Source: Pelomyxa schiedti (lineage: Eukaryota > Protista > Evosea). From it: 64,000 bases of DNA. This document shows, piece after piece, positions 22,174-29,691 of this stretch (position 1 is its first letter; each line of letters opens with the position of its first letter). The notes beneath the pieces are model-generated. The model did not search any database, had not been told where the DNA came from, and saw only the letters and a program-made list of their open reading frames with translations. The stretch is from positions 27,025 to 91,024 of the forward strand of contig JAHLWZ010000508.1 of NCBI GenBank assembly GCA_020536535.1, written 5' to 3'. Position numbers and translations under genes: made by a program.

Positions 22174-23336
22174 TCACAGCTCCTGCTGTTGGTGCTGAGT
22201 TGTTGTGTCTGGTTGTTGTCGTTTGTGTTTGTCTCGTGGTTGGGTATTTGTTGTGTCTTGTTGTTGTTGTGGGGGTGCGAGATCTTTGAGAGCAATTGGA
22301 TGGGATGACCACAGGTAGGGGTTGGTGGGATAGAACGCGGTCATGTCGTCGAATAGAACAAGCGCGGGCTTGTGCAGGGCTATCTGTCTATCCGGGCCCA
22401 GCACCGTTTGGGTGAAAATATGCCGCAGTTGCTCCAGTGCCTTCTTGAATTCATCTGTGGCTCCTTTGGGAAGGTTTTTGTATCTGTAGGCAAGTGTGAT
22501 GTGGAACCGGTATTCTGCTGGAGTTTAGAGAGATATAAGGGACAGATTGGGTCAATTGAAAGACCTGGATAGTAGTCCAGTCCTGCTTCTCTGGCAACTT
22601 GTTTCCTTAGTTTCTGTATGAGAGAATTTTCGAAATCGCGTGGCTCTAGACTTGTAATTATTAGTGGACTGGATATAAGTAAGAGGTAATGTTACCTCAC
22701 CGCAATTATCATGTTGCCGATTGATACATCCTTATATGTCGGAAGTAATTTGATTCTCCACTCACCGAGAGAATCCTGTATTTTTTCGAGGCCAGGTTTC
22801 AAGGTCATTAAATGATCAGCCATCTTTTTTGGGTTCCCACCAGCCGGCGAGTCATATTGAGTCTGCATTGGGAATATCTAGAAATATGTAAGTAAACTAA
22901 CATCCAATGTTAGACGACACACACGGTCATGTGATAGGAACTGATAGGCAGAGGTGTGTAATATGACCTAATGTGGGGGTTGTTTTCAATGAAATCGTAG
23001 ATAGGCTGCCATTTTTCTGGATCCATAATCTATTGAAATGGTCCCAACCGTTGGGCAACTAGTTACTTCCCAGAGTTTGCGTCATCCCACCCTTGTATTT
23101 TAAATATAGCCCACATCACACACTAAAATACATCACATTGGACAACCAACAACAGTGATCCACCTATACAATACATGTGATATGAGAGTTATTCCATAAA
23201 TAGGGACATAGGCCCCTGTGTCGTCCACTTTGTGCCACAAAGTGTCCGCGGAAACTACACCGCCCCATCCCATAATCGCCATCACCGTGGCGGCACCCAC
23301 AATCGCGATGAGCCCAAGTCCGCGGCCCCTCCTCAT
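22174..23336 (-). CDS. Secreted DUF1868-like 2H phosphoesterase
   Basis: Signal-peptide-like start MRRGRGLGLIAIVGAATVMAIMGWGGVVSA; KVDDTGAYVPIYGITLISH (the DUF1868 N-terminal motif); two HxT motifs (PLPISSYHMTV, YRFHITLAYRY); C-terminal LFDDMTAF. Confidence 0.75.
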
Positions 23337-23410
23337 AGTCGCTACCAAAGCAACGAATTGTGTGTATCTACTATGTTTCGAAATAAATTTTTCTGGCTGA
23401 GGTTTTGTGA

Positions 23411-26400
23411 TTAGGGTCTCAGCTTGCAATAGGTGGTAAAATCACCCCAATAAGCAGTGTACCCAGAGTCCTGGAATATGACCCTCCAGTGTCGCCTGTT
23501 GTCATTGCTGTCTACCTCTGTCCTTACTGGTACCAGTGTTGTTCCAGCCAGTGTTCTCGTTGTTGGACATCTCTGAACAACAGCGAATTGCCAGTGGAAG
23601 CTGATTCCAACCTTGAGGCCCAGTGTCACTGTCCACCACCATCCATCGCCATCTATTGTTGTTCTGGTCATAGTGGCTCCTTTGGAGAAGTCCAGGGCCC
23701 CCAGCTCCGGAATATCGCCGCATATGGACAGAACTTGGTCCGCGTGGTGGGTTATGTAGTGGATGTTGAACTGAAGCAGGGCCGGGATTCTGCCACAGGG
23801 GTCGACGAGGTCGAATGTGAGTTTGTATATGTTGGGTCCCTGGCACAGACAGCAGAAGCTGTAGCCGCAGGAGCAGGAGACAAGGTTGCAGCCACCTACG
23901 TCGTATTGGATTGGCCGGTTGCACCTGGGGCAACCCCGCGTGTTGTTGGCAATCCACTGTTGAAATGTTAGAATATTGAAACCGGAACATTGAATTGCCA
24001 TCTACCTGTGCGGATAGAGCGTCTTCTTCCAAAACTCTTTTCTGTTTCTTTGCTTCTGGCTCGTGCACAAATAGCTTCTTGGAAATGTCCTCACACCTGC
24101 TCAGATATTACTTTCTGAGACATATATACAGTTGGGAAAAAAGTAAAAATACACACCGGGAACCCGGGTGATACTGGAGGGAGCACCTCGCACAAAAGTG
24201 AAATCCACACTCCCCACATATTGCCTCATCGCAGACAACAAGACCTCCATAACTACATCTGGGGCACCGAACGAAATCCGACATAATGCTTAACGTTTCC
24301 TGGAGCAGTCTTTCTTCAAAAGCGGCTTTGTTCCGAACGGAAGCCCTGAATGAGATTAATGGGAGTAATAATGTGGAAATACTGACAATATATCGTAATA
24401 AGAGGCTAAAGAGAGACATCCACGCCTTGGACAGCGGGGATGTGTTGACATGTTGTTTTTGAACCATTGATCCAAGCAATTCAAACAGAATCTGAGGTGC
24501 ATTAAAAAGATATGTTAAGGTAATAGAGGTTTCAACGCACGCATGCGAACAACGACTCAAAGAAAGAAGGAGGCCCTCTTCCAGACAGATCCCACACAAC
24601 CCCTTTGTTGGAGGTAATGGGGTCGGCTCTGACAGTTCATTGAAAATCTGCACCTGAGACTCTTTTGGATATTGCATAAGACACTGGGAGGAACAGTGTG
24701 TGCCAAGGGGAAGTGCTTTAATGGGAGGATGGTCTGTAAATAGTATACATGCGGAGTTCATTAGGAACTGTACCAGCTGGGGATTGGAGTTCTTTATGGC
24801 ATAGTCAATTGGGGTCATTTCCGGGAGGTCGTCATGTGCCTTGCAGTGGATCCTGCAATCAGCTCCAGATTCAACAAGCAGTTTGCATATTTCTGGAAAA
24901 TTTCCAGCAGCTGCAGCATGCAAAGGAGTTTCGCCATATGGTGGGACAACTACTTGCGCTTTCACCCCACGCTTAAGAAGAGTGAGTACACCTTCAATGC
25001 ATCCATGTTCACAGAGAAGATAGAGAACACTTGGAGGAATGGCAAGGAAACTCGTGGTGGGTACAAAGCCAGCAGGAGGTGTACGAAATTGTGAAGGATC
25101 GATATCACATAGTGGCGCAGCCCGTGCAAAGCGAGTGAACTGCACAGAATCCAATCCCCCACTGGCAAGACAGAGGGCCGCATAGTCCAGACAAGAGGGT
25201 TTAGTCTTCCACGTCACAGGGTGTGCGGATTCATTGCGCATGCATCCCCAGCGCTCCTTGAAATCTCGTGCACAGAGTCCTTCCAAGGCATCATCAGTTG
25301 TATTGTCAAGAAGCAGGTGAAGCAGGGGAACTGCGGAATGTTTTGTAGGAGCATCACTGAGAGCACGAACCAAAGCTGGTGAGAGTTGCCGACAGAATGA
25401 GAACTGGGAATAGGGAGAGCCCATGCACCTCTTGGGGGCCAGGACAGAGGAAGCCCCGAATCGCAGCAGTAGTTCGACTGCCTGAGGGTAATGATCCACT
25501 GCCGAAGCAAGTGCCCGGCAGTCGTTTGGATTAACTCCGGAGAGGAGAAGTAGCTCAGCAGGCTCAACTCCCCATTCCAGAGCGCATAGAAGTAGCGATT
25601 TCTTTCCAAAGAGTTTTGGGAGAACTATACCTCGCAGGTCGAGAGGTAGAACTATTGGCTCAGTATCAGCAGGACGAGTTGTAACTTTAGTGGAGCAGTT
25701 CGATAACCCAGGTAGGGTTGTATGGCTCCGGATTTCCCGGTCTGTTTGAGTGACAAGTGCCTTCAATAGGGCGATATTTCGGCGCACCAAAGAAGCTTCT
25801 AGAGCTACTAATTGGGTGCATCCATTACTTATTGATAAAGCACTGCGGGGCATGCGACCGGAATTTCGAATTTCATTCAGAATTCCATCGATGAAGTTCC
25901 AGGTCGTATAACGAAAAATCATTGTGATCTGTTCCTGAGGAACAGTTTGGCGTGCAACTTTTGGGTTTTTTATTTGCCATTCATAAGGCACATCAGCCGG
26001 AATAAGAATTGGTGGCTGACGGAGTGGTAGTGGGTCCCCATAATCGTCCGATATTTCTTTCACATCCAGTAATTTATAAGGTGATAACATACTTGGTATG
26101 GTCAGCAAACATGAAAGGGAAAAGAAACAGACACCTTTTATCAGGTACGGCGTGAAAGAGCCTTCCTAAATCGGACACAACCAAAGTACCATTTGTGTAA
26201 CACTGTATCCCTAATTCTAGGCATGACACAGGGCACACCCAGCGAGAAACGTTATCTAATTGCATAAAGCGCTGCAGGTCCTTCATGCTTGTGCGGGAAA
26301 TAATCCACTTTAAAATAAGAGTAACCTGAGTGTGAGACTGCGCAGAAGGCAGCGAATCCGCGGCAATCTTCAATGCCCTGTGCAAGGCAGGCGATTTGTT

Positions 26401-27066
26401 TTCCAAAGCTGGGCACTCATTGACAGTACTCGCACCAGCATGCAACAGAGATAGCACGGAATCAGTGTCAGTCCCATCCACAGCCAGTGCCAAAGCGCAC
26501 CCATCATCCGGGTCCGCTCCTGCCTGCAACAACAACTCCAAAGCCCTGTTGCACCACATCATAGCAGCAACAACAGGTCTCTGTCCCCTGCCTACATCCG
26601 GCATATTAATTCCCCTCAGGCTCACAGGCAGGCTCACACCCACAACGCCGGTCGGCCCCCGAACCGGCACATCAACCGCAACCGCCCAGGCGGCCGATGC
26701 GTTCGAACGGGAATTCCCCACATTTTCCCCACTCCCATTAGCCGAACCGCCCTCGGTGCGCGTGGCCAGCATGGCCTCGAGGCACCTCGTGGCCCGCTTC
26801 TCGAGGCTGAGGGTCACGCAGGCCCACAGGGGGCTCCCGCGCCACCGGGAGTAGCGCTCCGAGTACGCGTCCACCTCCCAGTCCCAGTCCCAGTCCACGC
26901 ACGAATTGTGGGTGCAGTCCGAGGCGGCGGGCGGCGCGACGCCGGGCAGGTTGGCGGGGTCCCACGAGGGGTCGCAGCCGAGGGACCGAGCCACCGTGTG
27001 CACGAGGCCCCTGTGGTCGTCCGCCGACACGAGCCCCACGAGGCGCCGCAACGTGCGCGGCCGCAT
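23411..27066 (-). CDS. Ankyrin-repeat RBR (RING1-IBR-RING2) E3 ubiquitin ligase with C-terminal CBM20-like domain
   Basis: ORFs 26074..27138, 24108..26108 and 23411..24001 are joined by GT-AG introns. ANK: ETPLHAAAAGNFPEICKLLVESGAD. RING1: CGIC...CSHA|FCLNC...CPRRGC. IBR: CPRC...CGECGFHFCARCSLQYHPGSRC. RING2: CPRCNRPIQYDVGGCNLVSCSCGYSFCCLC. In the same exon follows LQFNIHYITHHADQVLSICGDIPELGAL...WWWTVTLGLKVGISFHWQFAVV...DNRR...YW (CBM20 pattern). Confidence 0.85.
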
Positions 27067-27260
27067 TGCTCCGAGAAAAAAAACAAATAGTCGGTTCGGA
27101 CTTCGGAAGGGAATTGGGCGAATTGGAGTGGGAACCAATTGGCGGTGGAGTGGAAATGTGGTGCCACCAACAAAAACGAAATTGATTTGCCTGCTCGTTC
27201 AACTGTTGTTTGATGGGCTGAAGATTGATCATTTTATCAAAACAAACAACGACGGTACAC

Positions 27261-29691
27261 ATGTCTGCAACGACTGCGTCGGGAACAAGTGGGAGTGCGG
27301 TTGGTGTGGGTGTGACGGGTATAGCGGCGACGGTCAAGATCGTCACTGCTTCCGGGACAAAGCAGGTGACCGTCCAGGCTGACTCGTCGTGGCTCGGCAG
27401 CCAGCTCATCAATGCCGTCGATCCCTTGGGCAAAATCGTGCGCGCCCAACGTCGCTCACATTTCGCGCATTTGATTTTAGTTTTTGTTGTTGGTATTGGA
27501 TTTGCTGATGTTTGTCTCACACACAACAGAAACTACTGTGGGGTGGAAAGTTTATCAAGCCAGATGTCACTCTTGGTGAACAGGCACTCCCACCTGTAGT
27601 GAGAATCATCGCTCTGGCGGAAACTTCCCACGTTGTTGCCGCTGCAACCGGCTCTCCCTTGCCCTCGCTTGTGCGGACCCCTCCTTCCAATTCTCCAACA
27701 CAAGCACCAACCGATGCGACTGCTTCTGCTCCCACTCTTACTACGCCGGAAGGTCCCCTGCCCATCGATGTCAAAGCGCTCGCTTCGGCGGCCTCCAATT
27801 TGGTACGAGACACGTTCACTGTGGGAGACAACTAAGGTAATCCCTAGGCTTCTCGAACGGATGGGGGTACGCACCATGATGAAGATTACTTCTTCGAAAT
27901 TGAAGACCAATCTGGTAGACGCGTTCCCTTACCAGATAAGGACCGGCAAGCTTTGATAAAAGGACTAACCCTCCAATCCAAAGGTGAGAGTTTTCCCCTT
28001 CCTTTTATCTCACTGTCCTTCAGGAGAGAAATTGTTAAGGGAAGGAGATTTTAGTACCTCTCTGCAAGTTTTTCTTGAAGCTGACGAATCTTTTTCTCAA
28101 TGGTTTCCATTCCACCAATTAATACGAAGTTTAACCAACATAGTGACGACAAAATACTTTCTGCTGTGGACAATTATGCCATACTGTGTTTAGATGTTGC
28201 TTGGTGTTACTTGAAACAAAAGTGCGCCGCCTTCATGGGTGATGCAGGGTGGAGGATAAGTAGAGCAGAAACATACTTGAGTCAATCTCATGGAGCTGAT
28301 GGTCATCGCCTTAAAATTCTGCGGGTTTGTCCACTTCACACGTATCCTCAGTTTACATCCCCTAGAATGGAGCTGACAATGCTGAGAACGTACTCTATGT
28401 CCGCCTTAAAATTCTTAAAGCAGTACTTTCCTACTACACTGGAGGTGTGTGATTTTTTTTGGTTATGTGTGCTTTTAAGATTCCCTAGACCTCACTAATG
28501 CTAAAAAATTTATTGTCGAGGCCGGTGACAAGCTCCAAGGTATGATTTCTTTTTCATTTCTTTTCCTTACAACAAAAGCGCTCAGTGTTGACGATCTCGA
28601 CCTTGCACAAGTAATGTCCATGGGTTTCACGGACAATGAATCCCGTCACGCATTACGCTCGTTCCCGCCAAAAGAAGTAAAGCTCCTTGATCATAACACA
28701 AGAGCACTAAAAAACAACAGTTTGGGATTCAGAGGGCAATTGACTTTCTTATTCAAGCTCGTGAAGAGAAACTTGCTAAACGCACCGAAGAATTGCTGTA
28801 CTTTAAGAATTAGAAAAATTCTTTATGAACTCTCTCCAGGAGAGCAGCCGAAGAGCTGAGGAGAAGGACATTTGGCAGAACTGCAAACGGGTATGTATCT
28901 ACATTCCTATTCGCTCTTTTCACAGACTTTAGAAATTGGATTGACATGTCTCTGCTGAAAGGTACAATTTAGGGTACTATAAATTATTCTAAGGAACATA
29001 GAGCTGATGGCAAGCGGGTTCTTGGAGAAATTCGTTGTTGAAGGTAACTGGATTCCGCAAGTAGCTTACCTTAACGCTTTCACAGCTCTGAGGCAAACCA
29101 ATAACAACCGAGATGAAGCCGTCAAATTACTCCTCTTGCATGGTGATTTGCTTGAACCGGCACCACCACCCGTTCCCAAAGAACCCGAACTCTCTGACGA
29201 CGACAGTGAAAAGATTGCCCACCTCGTGTCTCTGGGATATTCCATCTCGAAGTCCAAAAGTATCTCCCCATTAATTCCCCAACTTCTCCTAATTCACCCA
29301 CAGAAGCATTGAAAACATGTAATGGTGACTTGGCACTTGCATCTGACCTCCTCATTGCATCAGCGGCCAACGATCCCCCAAACTCGGACACAGCCACCTC
29401 CGCGGAGATGGGCGATGACGAGGAGGCAGAAGCCGATGCCGATGCCGATCCCGAAGCGGACGCCGGAGCAGAAGCTCCAGTTAATCTAATCACTCCAGAA
29501 GAAGAGCAGAGACGGGTAATCCCTTTCCACACCATTAAACTATCAACTAAACGTTACACAAAACAACTCCACAGGCGGCAGAGAAGGACCTCGTGCACAA
29601 CGCTGACACTGACCCCAACTCGTACCTAGGGTGCTCCCTAGACGATGAGCAGTCAGTCTACAACGAGTACTCTGCCCTCATATTCCAATAG
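27261..29691 (+). CDS. NUB1: NEDD8 ultimate buster 1 homolog (UBL, NUB1 core, three UBA domains)
   Basis: N-terminal UBL (KLLWGGKFIKPDVTLGEQ); VDNYAILCLDVAWCY; UBA-like segments (VMSMGF...RHALR, MASGF...ALRQTNNNRDEAVKLLL, LVSLGY...ALKTCNGDLALA); acidic C-terminus. Confidence 0.8.

Follow-up and report, generated by a model that had tools for sequence, protein, structure and literature searches.

Can one protein carry both a ubiquitin ligase and the domain that would bring this ligase to glycogen? The question is raised by the gene Pelo_6410 of the glycogen-rich anaerobic amoeba Pelomyxa schiedti, located on the minus strand of a 64,000-nucleotide (nt) stretch of contig JAHLWZ010000508.1 (assembly GCA_020536535.1; the whole stretch is called the window below). 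A preliminary description, made from the DNA sequence alone, had read the gene product as an RBR-type E3 ubiquitin ligase fused to a CBM20 starch- or glycogen-binding domain and targeting ubiquitin to glycogen. The RBR/CBM20 fusion was found to be real, expressed and present in three paralogs; however, the copy in the window has lost its site-1 glucan contacts and needs a damaged intron to be retained for full-length translation. Both parts of the protein are of known kinds, and their combination was found outside Pelomyxa in no organism among the best 150 of 1944 matches of a profile search. We consider it fairly probable that Pelo_6410 is a ligase which acts on proteins and binds glucan weakly or in an altered way, and that it belongs to a lineage-specific E3 family of three paralogs.

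Gene structure and C-terminal domains of Pelo_6410

The encoded protein was identified by a word-based protein search, which returned KAH3761761.1 ("hypothetical protein Pelo_6410", Pelomyxa schiedti). The spliced coding sequence of the window, 27066–23411, is an exact match to this protein (P0001), provided that intron 2 is retained. Two long open reading frames (ORFs) are located here on the minus strand, namely 24108–26108 with ankyrin repeats and IBR and 23411–24001 with RING2 and CBM_20. A helical/ankyrin N-terminus is followed by RING1, IBR, RING2 and a C-terminal CBM20, which is located about 20 residues past RING2. The coding region and the features of its ligase and C-terminal parts are as follows (aa, amino acids):

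27066–23411, minus strand: Pelo_6410 coding region (KAH3761761.1, P0001, 1137 aa; stop codon 23413–23411)
24416–24596, minus strand: RING1, aa 810–853 (Pfam zf-C3HC4 and zf-RING_2), split by intron 3
24153–24320, minus strand: IBR, aa 872–927 (Pfam IBR PF01485, 43 bits, profile 3–65 of 65; aligns with the IBR of ARIH1)
23957–24005, minus strand: intron 6, 49 nt (joints in RNA contigs of X1 and X2), directly upstream of the RING2-CBM20 exon
23795–23944, minus strand: RING2/Rcat, aa 961–1010 (Pfam IBR_1 and alignment with ARIH1 RING2; the TFD..DPC tail ends at Cys1010)
23414–23785, minus strand: CBM20, aa 1014–1137 (Pfam CBM_20, AlphaFold, Foldseek)
23695–23693, 23590–23588 and 23521–23519, minus strand: the site-1 equivalents L1044, Q1079 and T1102, which replace W543, K578 and W590

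Contigs of one study (RNA from three single-cell runs, DNA from one run) were placed on positions 22700–28600. RNA contig X1 record 1 (1016 nt) covers 23399–23956, 24006–24091, 24152–24344 and 24386–24491 and continues beyond the joint at 24541; the introns within it are of the GT..AG type and 41–60 nt long. Therefore, RING1, IBR, RING2 and CBM20 are located on one spliced mRNA. RING2 and CBM20 share exon 7 (23411–23956), which is supported by RNA, in agreement with the single uninterrupted exon of the preliminary description. Its placement of RING1, IBR and ankyrin repeats upstream of them was likewise borne out by Pfam and by the spliced RNA contig, the RNA extending from RING1 through CBM20.

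Differences between RNA and genome were also found. At 23859–23860, AGC is replaced by TAC in all three RNA runs, which changes Ser989 to Tyr (RING2 GYSF to GYYF) and gives the same residue as in the paralog P0002. The others are Asp1045Asn at 23692 (one run), a silent change at 24273 (Phe887) and Ala600Thr at 25226. These differences may stem from alleles, from strains or from errors in the single-cell assemblies.

RING1 has a C3HC4 arrangement (zf-C3HC4, 22.0 bits with a cutoff of 21; zf-RING_2 at aa 810–849), and its cysteine and histidine ligands are unchanged across all three paralogs. In the ORF 23411–24001, RING2 was detected as Pfam IBR/IBR_1 (ORF aa 16–56). The catalytic cysteine, expected at 23888–23890 in a GGCN motif, is indeed found there as Cys979 (23890–23888, VGGCNLV); it aligns with GGCNH of ARIH1, and its equivalent is invariant in 19 of 19 aligned RING2 domains (alignment A6). 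Pelo_6410 retains this cysteine and all zinc ligands, and thioester transfer of ubiquitin via Cys979 is predicted. Two other positions of the domain are unusual. At the site of the catalytic histidine, two residues after the cysteine (Cys+2), Leu981 is present in the motif GCNLV, which is common to Pelo_6410 and the paralog P0002, whereas the paralog P0006 has GCSHM with the histidine. In addition, Cys992 occupies the place where the paralogs have the tryptophan of the FCW motif.

The missing histidine had been compared with that of HOIL-1, in which W462 stands at Cys+2 and a Zn2/Cys6 cluster supplies the base, C-terminal H510 (PMC9834252). Leu981 does stand at this site, but it is not a HOIL-1 signature. 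The Cys+2 histidine is not universal among RBR proteins: RNF14-like proteins have GCNKM. Since the histidine is present in Pelo_8059 (the gene of P0006) and missing in RNF14-like RBRs, its loss is a derived trait of two paralogs and not a sign of ester chemistry. The leucine lowers confidence in normal lysine-directed kinetics and not in RBR membership. The closest solved RING2 domains are those of Ariadne (E 1e-11), then parkin, CUL9 and HOIP, and HOIL-1 follows only at E 1e-4. Past FCxxC, Pelo_6410 has one further conserved cysteine (C1010), located in the TFD..DPC tail that is common to ordinary ankyrin-RBR relatives, and sequence comparison revealed no equivalents of the HOIL-1-type Zn2/Cys6 cluster and C-terminal histidine (H510) in its RING2. 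Kinship with HOIL-1 was thus rejected: the RING2 is nearest to those of Ariadne, parkin and HOIP, and the special HOIL-1 cluster is missing.

That the C-terminal domain is a CBM20 was established with several tools. In the ORF 23411–24001, CBM_20 (PF00686, curated cutoff 23.3 bits) scored 29.2 bits (E 7.8e-07, profile 5–70 of 97); the score was 25.8 bits in the full protein and 30.0 bits in the isolated tail (E 4.5e-07). Modeling of the domain using AlphaFold (18-sequence alignment, which contained CBM20 sequences) led to a model with a mean local confidence (pLDDT) of 77 and a predicted template modeling score (pTM) of 0.70. All 50 PDB matches listed by Foldseek for this model were CBM20 domains or CBM20-bearing amylolytic enzymes. 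Human GPCPD1 (2z0b; TM-score 0.85, root-mean-square deviation 1.9) and STBD1 in complex with maltotetraose (8x8k; TM-score 0.84) were the leading ones, and glucoamylase was also matched. Structural neighbors of the domain in the ESM Atlas all carried CBM_20 in varied architectures, none with IBR.

In glucoamylase (1AC0), W543, W590 and K578 form glucan-binding site 1, and Y527 and Y556 form site 2 (PMC9069913). Residues were mapped by a HMMER alignment to 1AC0 and by multiple alignment A2. Pelo_6410 has the motifs LGAL, HWQF and RTE instead of LGxW, YKF and WE, and so the site-1 residues are replaced as the preliminary description had noticed. Its caveat of weak or altered glucan binding turned out to be stronger than it was worded, all three key contacts being gone. 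Its other remark, that the site-2 tryptophan region is kept, did not hold. The retained tryptophan, equivalent to W563, is invariant in every CBM20 of alignment A2 and is therefore a fold marker, and the site-2 tyrosines Y527 and Y556 correspond to His1027 and Ile1058. These tyrosines are missing in P0006 as well and seemingly in STBD1, so their loss may be typical of an STBD1-like subgroup.

In STBD1, mutation of the first site-1 tryptophan alone abolishes amylose binding; in laforin, this residue is a site affected in Lafora disease (PMC4076837). As three site-1 contacts are lost, binding of alpha-glucan via the canonical site of the Pelo_6410 CBM20 is probably weak or absent.

Paralogs and origin of the fusion

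Two paralogs of Pelo_6410 are encoded on other contigs of GCA_020536535.1, namely P0002 (1108 aa, L001 6001–9602) and P0006, that is Pelo_8059 (1212 aa, L002 3001–6955); neither is in tandem with Pelo_6410. All three have the order ankyrin-RBR-CBM20 and six introns at identical positions, and the fusion is therefore older than the duplications.

The CBM_20 match of Pelo_8059 is the highest among them, with 48.1 bits over profile positions 6–90, and its CBM20 aligns best with human STBD1 (8x8k, E 4e-08). Compared with 1AC0, W543, K578, W590 and N595 are all kept. Its RING2 is canonical as well (GGCSHM...FCW), with the catalytic histidine present. P0002 scored 29.6–33.6 bits for CBM_20 and keeps only the first tryptophan of the site-1 contacts, and Pelo_6410 keeps none. 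A 25-residue insertion is located inside the CBM20 of P0002. Among the paralogs, W992C in the FCW motif and W1044L are unique to Pelo_6410. On these grounds, Pelo_8059 can be regarded as the canonical member of the family and Pelo_6410 as a derived paralog, the most degenerate one, with a splice lesion. The name RNF14, which NCBI gives to the product of P0002, was rejected: no RWD domain was found in P0001, P0002 or P0006.

The ratio of nonsynonymous to synonymous substitution rates (dN/dS) between Pelo_6410 and P0002 was 0.17 for RBR, 0.24 for CBM20, 0.22 for the ankyrin repeats and 0.49 for the N-terminus, values which indicate that RBR and CBM20 are under purifying selection. As the CBM20 of Pelo_6410 is under such selection, it presumably still has a role, be it with an altered ligand, with a protein partner or in regulation within the molecule. 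A patch of unusual sequence (WWW) and a C-terminal extension are conserved as well.

The distribution of the architecture was evaluated with a HMMER profile of RING2 and CBM20 searched against a set of 1.84 billion representative proteins. At E <= 0.001, 1944 matches were obtained, of which the best 150 were examined using local phmmer and Pfam. RBR and CBM20 occurred together only in Pelomyxa proteins, and the other matches among these 150 were RBR proteins or fungal proteins with multiple CBM20 domains. The top matches with CBM20 only were proteins of the rock-inhabiting fungi Rachicladosporium and Cryoendolithus (P0008/P0155/P0156), which have 2700–2980 residues and a dozen tandem CBM20 domains. 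When the RBR-CBM20 part of P0006 was the query, a word-based search yielded Pelomyxa proteins only, and an ESM Atlas feature search gave no usable match. Neither the combination of CBM20 and IBR nor these Pelomyxa proteins were found in the literature searched.

The nearest relatives outside Pelomyxa are the ankyrin-RBR proteins P0025, P0016/P0174, P0042 and P0175, uncharacterized proteins from environmental eukaryote assemblies. BLASTP of P0006 against P0025 revealed 36% identity over 343 aa (E 4e-65), from the ankyrin repeats through the DPC motif, and the RING2 tail GPY..YTFD..DPC is common to the Pelomyxa family and P0016, P0025 and P0042. In Pelo_6410 itself, an RBR with the RING2 ending GP...TFD..DPC follows directly on ankyrin repeats. 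The ankyrin-RBR relatives stop 2–9 residues after the DPC cysteine. No CBM20 exon was found downstream of P0025 on its contig (L003, Logan SRR6824194, 3804 nt), where an AT-rich intergenic stretch is followed by another gene. This contig belongs to an AT-rich uncultured eukaryote; its intron-free ankyrin-RBR gene, next to which a B-box-like ORF is located, encodes the closest non-Pelomyxa relative. Since the nearest outside relatives end just past RING2, CBM20 was appended to an older ankyrin-RBR ligase in the Pelomyxa lineage. The domain gained is STBD1-like and lies about 20 residues beyond the final zinc ligand of RING2. In HOIP and HOIL-1, this position, right after the catalytic domain, is occupied by elements that position the acceptor (PMC9834252).

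The damaged intron 2 and the proposed function

Six introns of Pelo_6410 are seen in RNA contigs, of which intron 6 is given above. The features upstream of the IBR end are as follows:

25023–27066, minus strand: N-terminal region of about 667 aa, without a significant Pfam family; contains intron 1
26092–26134, minus strand: intron 1 (RNA contigs), inside the N-terminal region
24750–25022, minus strand: ankyrin repeats, aa 668–758 (Pfam Ank_2 59.5 bits, Ank 46 bits)
24684–24748, minus strand: damaged intron 2 of 65 nt, which follows the ankyrin repeats and precedes RING1 (X3 record 13, joint 24683/24749)
24492–24540, minus strand: intron 3 (RNA), interrupts RING1
24345–24385, minus strand: intron 4 (RNA), upstream of IBR
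24092–24151, minus strand: intron 5 (RNA), at the IBR end

For the N-terminal 667 aa of Pelo_6410, Pfam gave no family even at an E-value of 5. The homologous place of P0006 gave a weak Ank match, and matches of the Ank type were found to the N-terminus of P0025, which consists entirely of ankyrin repeats. This region is probably a degenerate ankyrin/helical repeat region. On the plus strand, the adjacent gene (27750–28600) is transcribed and contains a series of very small GT-AG introns (39–45 nt) in the RNA contigs.

In both paralogs, a phase-2 intron is located at the site of intron 2 (...AG|GTA...CAG|T), and the 22 residues aa 759–780 of the GenBank model of Pelo_6410 are absent. In that model intron 2 is read through as 22 in-frame codons, the first base of which is the last base of exon 2 (24749). 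Two lesions were found at this site in Pelo_6410: the exon before the intron lacks one base, and CTG stands in place of the ancestral CAG acceptor. The splice that was observed uses a cryptic acceptor 10 nt downstream of the ancestral one and removes 65 nt. No in-frame splice alternative with canonical GT/AG sites was found for intron 2, and the frame is kept only by retention. The full-length Pelo_6410 fusion thus depends on retention of the damaged intron. Downstream of it, five exons are free of stops and frameshifts, and every splice phase is intact.

How the enzyme would work can be outlined for the family. CBM20 would dock the protein on alpha-glucan (glycogen) particles, RING1 would bind a ubiquitin-charged E2, and ubiquitin would move to the RING2 cysteine (Cys979 in Pelo_6410). 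It would then be handed to a target near the particle, most likely to glycogen-associated proteins shown by the ankyrin region, in the manner of laforin-malin; the glucan itself would be a less likely target. Pelo_8059 has every residue needed for this mechanism. Artificial proximity of CBM20 and the RBR ligase HOIL-1L leads to ubiquitylation of glycogen and its delivery to lysosomes in human cells (a 2026 Nature paper, PMC13345935). Because this engineered proximity suffices, the idea of glycogen targeting is mechanistically plausible, by analogy, at the level of the family. The preliminary interpretation is partly upheld for the family and weakened for Pelo_6410.

Several points weigh against Pelo_6410 as a working member of a family unique to this lineage. 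A distant RBR-CBM20 protein scoring below about 47 bits would fall outside the best 150 of the 1944 matches. The two-domain AlphaFold model of RING2 and CBM20 (A6) is moderate, with a pTM of 0.58 and a linker pLDDT of about 63, and the domain arrangement in it is not firm; the combined alignments A4 and A5, in which MAFFT placed fungal CBM20 fragments beneath RING2, were excluded from modeling. As the canonical glucan contacts are gone, even the localization step is doubtful for this copy. Finally, the sole RNA contig that spans intron 2 (X3 record 13, depth 2.4) is frameshifted and runs into a stop 16 codons on. If this isoform were the main one, RBR and CBM20 would be cut off from the ankyrin part or not be translated at all.

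Hence either retention yields a full-length enzyme, or the ankyrin and RBR-CBM20 parts were recently uncoupled. In the latter case Pelo_6410 would be in early decay, splicing of intron 2 giving a truncated ankyrin-only protein, RBR-CBM20 no longer being made and the open downstream frame reflecting the recency of the lesion. The two lesions, the frameshifted contig and the copy-specific losses W992C and W1044L at conserved functional residues agree with such decay. However, the intact downstream exons and splice phases do not, and with intron 2 retained, reading continues through it in frame and without a stop. In a relative-rate test of RBR and CBM20 with P0006 as the outgroup, Pelo_6410 was not accelerated (17 lineage-specific changes versus 19 in P0002), and decay was thus not demonstrated by this test; the dN/dS values of 0.17–0.24 point the same way. 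The RBR-CBM20 exons also have the deepest RNA contig cover of the gene, although contig depth is a poor measure. The selection statistics favor continued translation, although a very recent lesion could escape them, and we regard decay as unlikely.

The acceptor of ubiquitin could also be the glucan itself, joined by an oxyester on glucose hydroxyls as with HOIL-1, which would mark glycogen for clearance by a one-polypeptide device. The place of CBM20 directly after RING2, where HOIP and HOIL-1 position their acceptors (PMC9834252), the sufficiency of forced CBM20/HOIL-1L proximity in human cells (PMC13345935) and the absence of a lysine-activating histidine at +2 in Pelo_6410, as in HOIL-1, speak for this possibility. 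Nevertheless, the RING2 is Ariadne-like and not HOIL-1-like, without the Zn2/Cys6 cluster and an equivalent of His510, the canonical paralog Pelo_8059 keeps the usual histidine, and RNF14-like RBRs lack the same histidine. Moreover, Pelo_6410, which has no histidine, has also lost the glucan contacts, so that the two combined features do not go together. Direct glucan ubiquitylation is accordingly judged quite unlikely. A bolder form of this idea concerns the whole family as a natural one-polypeptide system of glycogen ubiquitylation. CBM20 would hold glucan by the RING2 thioester, ubiquitin would be esterified to glucose, and glycogen bodies would be marked for lysosomal turnover, the paralogs without the histidine (including Pelo_6410) being tuned for hydroxyl and not lysine acceptors. 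This proposal is speculative and seems rather unlikely to us.

Another reading starts from the site-1 residues, which are replaced in the two derived paralogs in a domain that is nevertheless under purifying selection and that has the conserved unusual WWW patch and the conserved C-terminal extension. The CBM20 of these paralogs could have been repurposed for a polysaccharide on ingested prey or starch or on the bacterial and archaeal symbionts in the cytoplasm, or for a protein partner. The ligase would then serve surveillance or symbiont control, as has been suggested for RNF213 and its CBM20. P. schiedti hosts three intracellular prokaryotes and eats polysaccharides (PMC10579272), the CBM20 of STBD1 also mediates protein-protein contacts (PMC4076837), and RNF213 is a precedent of an E3 ligase with CBM20 implicated in pathogen recognition. 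However, point mutations in the RNF213 CBM20 left pathogen recruitment unchanged (PMC11549300), and we find the repurposing improbable. A ligase acting on proteins, its glucan binding weak or altered, is the reading that we prefer for Pelo_6410.

That glycogen is ubiquitylated in cells and tissues was demonstrated only in 2026, and the key experiment tied CBM20 to HOIL-1L by chemical dimerization. In Pelomyxa the same join of CBM20 and RBR is made genetically, in three copies, one canonical and two derived. They form a natural series for asking whether proximity alone directs an RBR ligase to glycogen or glycogen-bound proteins, which RING2 residues set the choice between lysine and hydroxyl acceptors, and how CBM20 evolves after the loss of sugar contacts. 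If the family does esterify ubiquitin to glucose, glycogen ubiquitylation would be an ancient or convergent control of storage polysaccharides and not a mammalian peculiarity. The value of Pelo_6410, a degenerate member with a splice lesion, is mainly comparative.

Comparison with known systems

The ankyrin-RBR relatives P0025, P0016/P0174, P0042 and P0175 share with the Pelomyxa family the order of ankyrin repeats, RING1, IBR and RING2 and the RING2 tail motif, but they have no CBM20 and end soon after DPC. Animal ANKIB1 also combines ankyrin repeats with RBR and is not known to have a CBM20. RNF14 has an RBR core, and its RNF14-like relatives lack the RING2 histidine (GCNKM); it differs in having an RWD domain (present in the RNF14-like P0023) and no CBM20.

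In animals, laforin (CBM20 and a phosphatase) and malin (a RING-NHL E3) form a system in which CBM20 brings the ligase to glycogen and glycogen-associated proteins are ubiquitylated. The likeness to the Pelomyxa family is a functional analogy, CBM20 guiding a ubiquitin ligase to glycogen. Unlike in Pelomyxa, two proteins are involved, and the ligase is a plain RING ligase and not an RBR with a catalytic cysteine; sequence relation is limited to CBM20. Pelo_6410 lacks an equivalent of laforin W32, the tryptophan affected by mutation in Lafora disease.

STBD1 (genethonin-1), a glycophagy receptor, has the solved CBM20 closest to the family. It shares HY.T, WKF, RWE..NR and the terminal tryptophan with Pelo_8059, and the TM-score of its matches to the Pelo_6410 CBM20 model in Foldseek is 0.82–0.84. 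In STBD1, however, CBM20 is joined to a membrane anchor and an Atg8-interacting motif and not to a ligase.

RNF213 resembles the family as a giant animal E3 ligase that carries CBM20 (PMC11549300). However, RNF213 belongs to the dynein-like AAA+ proteins and has RING and an RZ finger; it is not an RBR, and its CBM20 is N-terminal, far from the catalytic site. HOIL-1 (RBCK1), which ubiquitylates unbranched glucans, is an RBR with a catalytic cysteine and without the Cys+2 histidine, as is Pelo_6410. Its UBL, NZF, Zn2/Cys6 cluster and H510 base are all missing in Pelo_6410, its RING2 is a more distant match than those of Ariadne, parkin or HOIP, and HOIL-1 has no carbohydrate-binding module itself. 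It is the engineered pair of FKBP-CBM20 and FRB-HOIL-1L (PMC13345935) that, like the Pelomyxa family, joins CBM20 to an RBR ligase.

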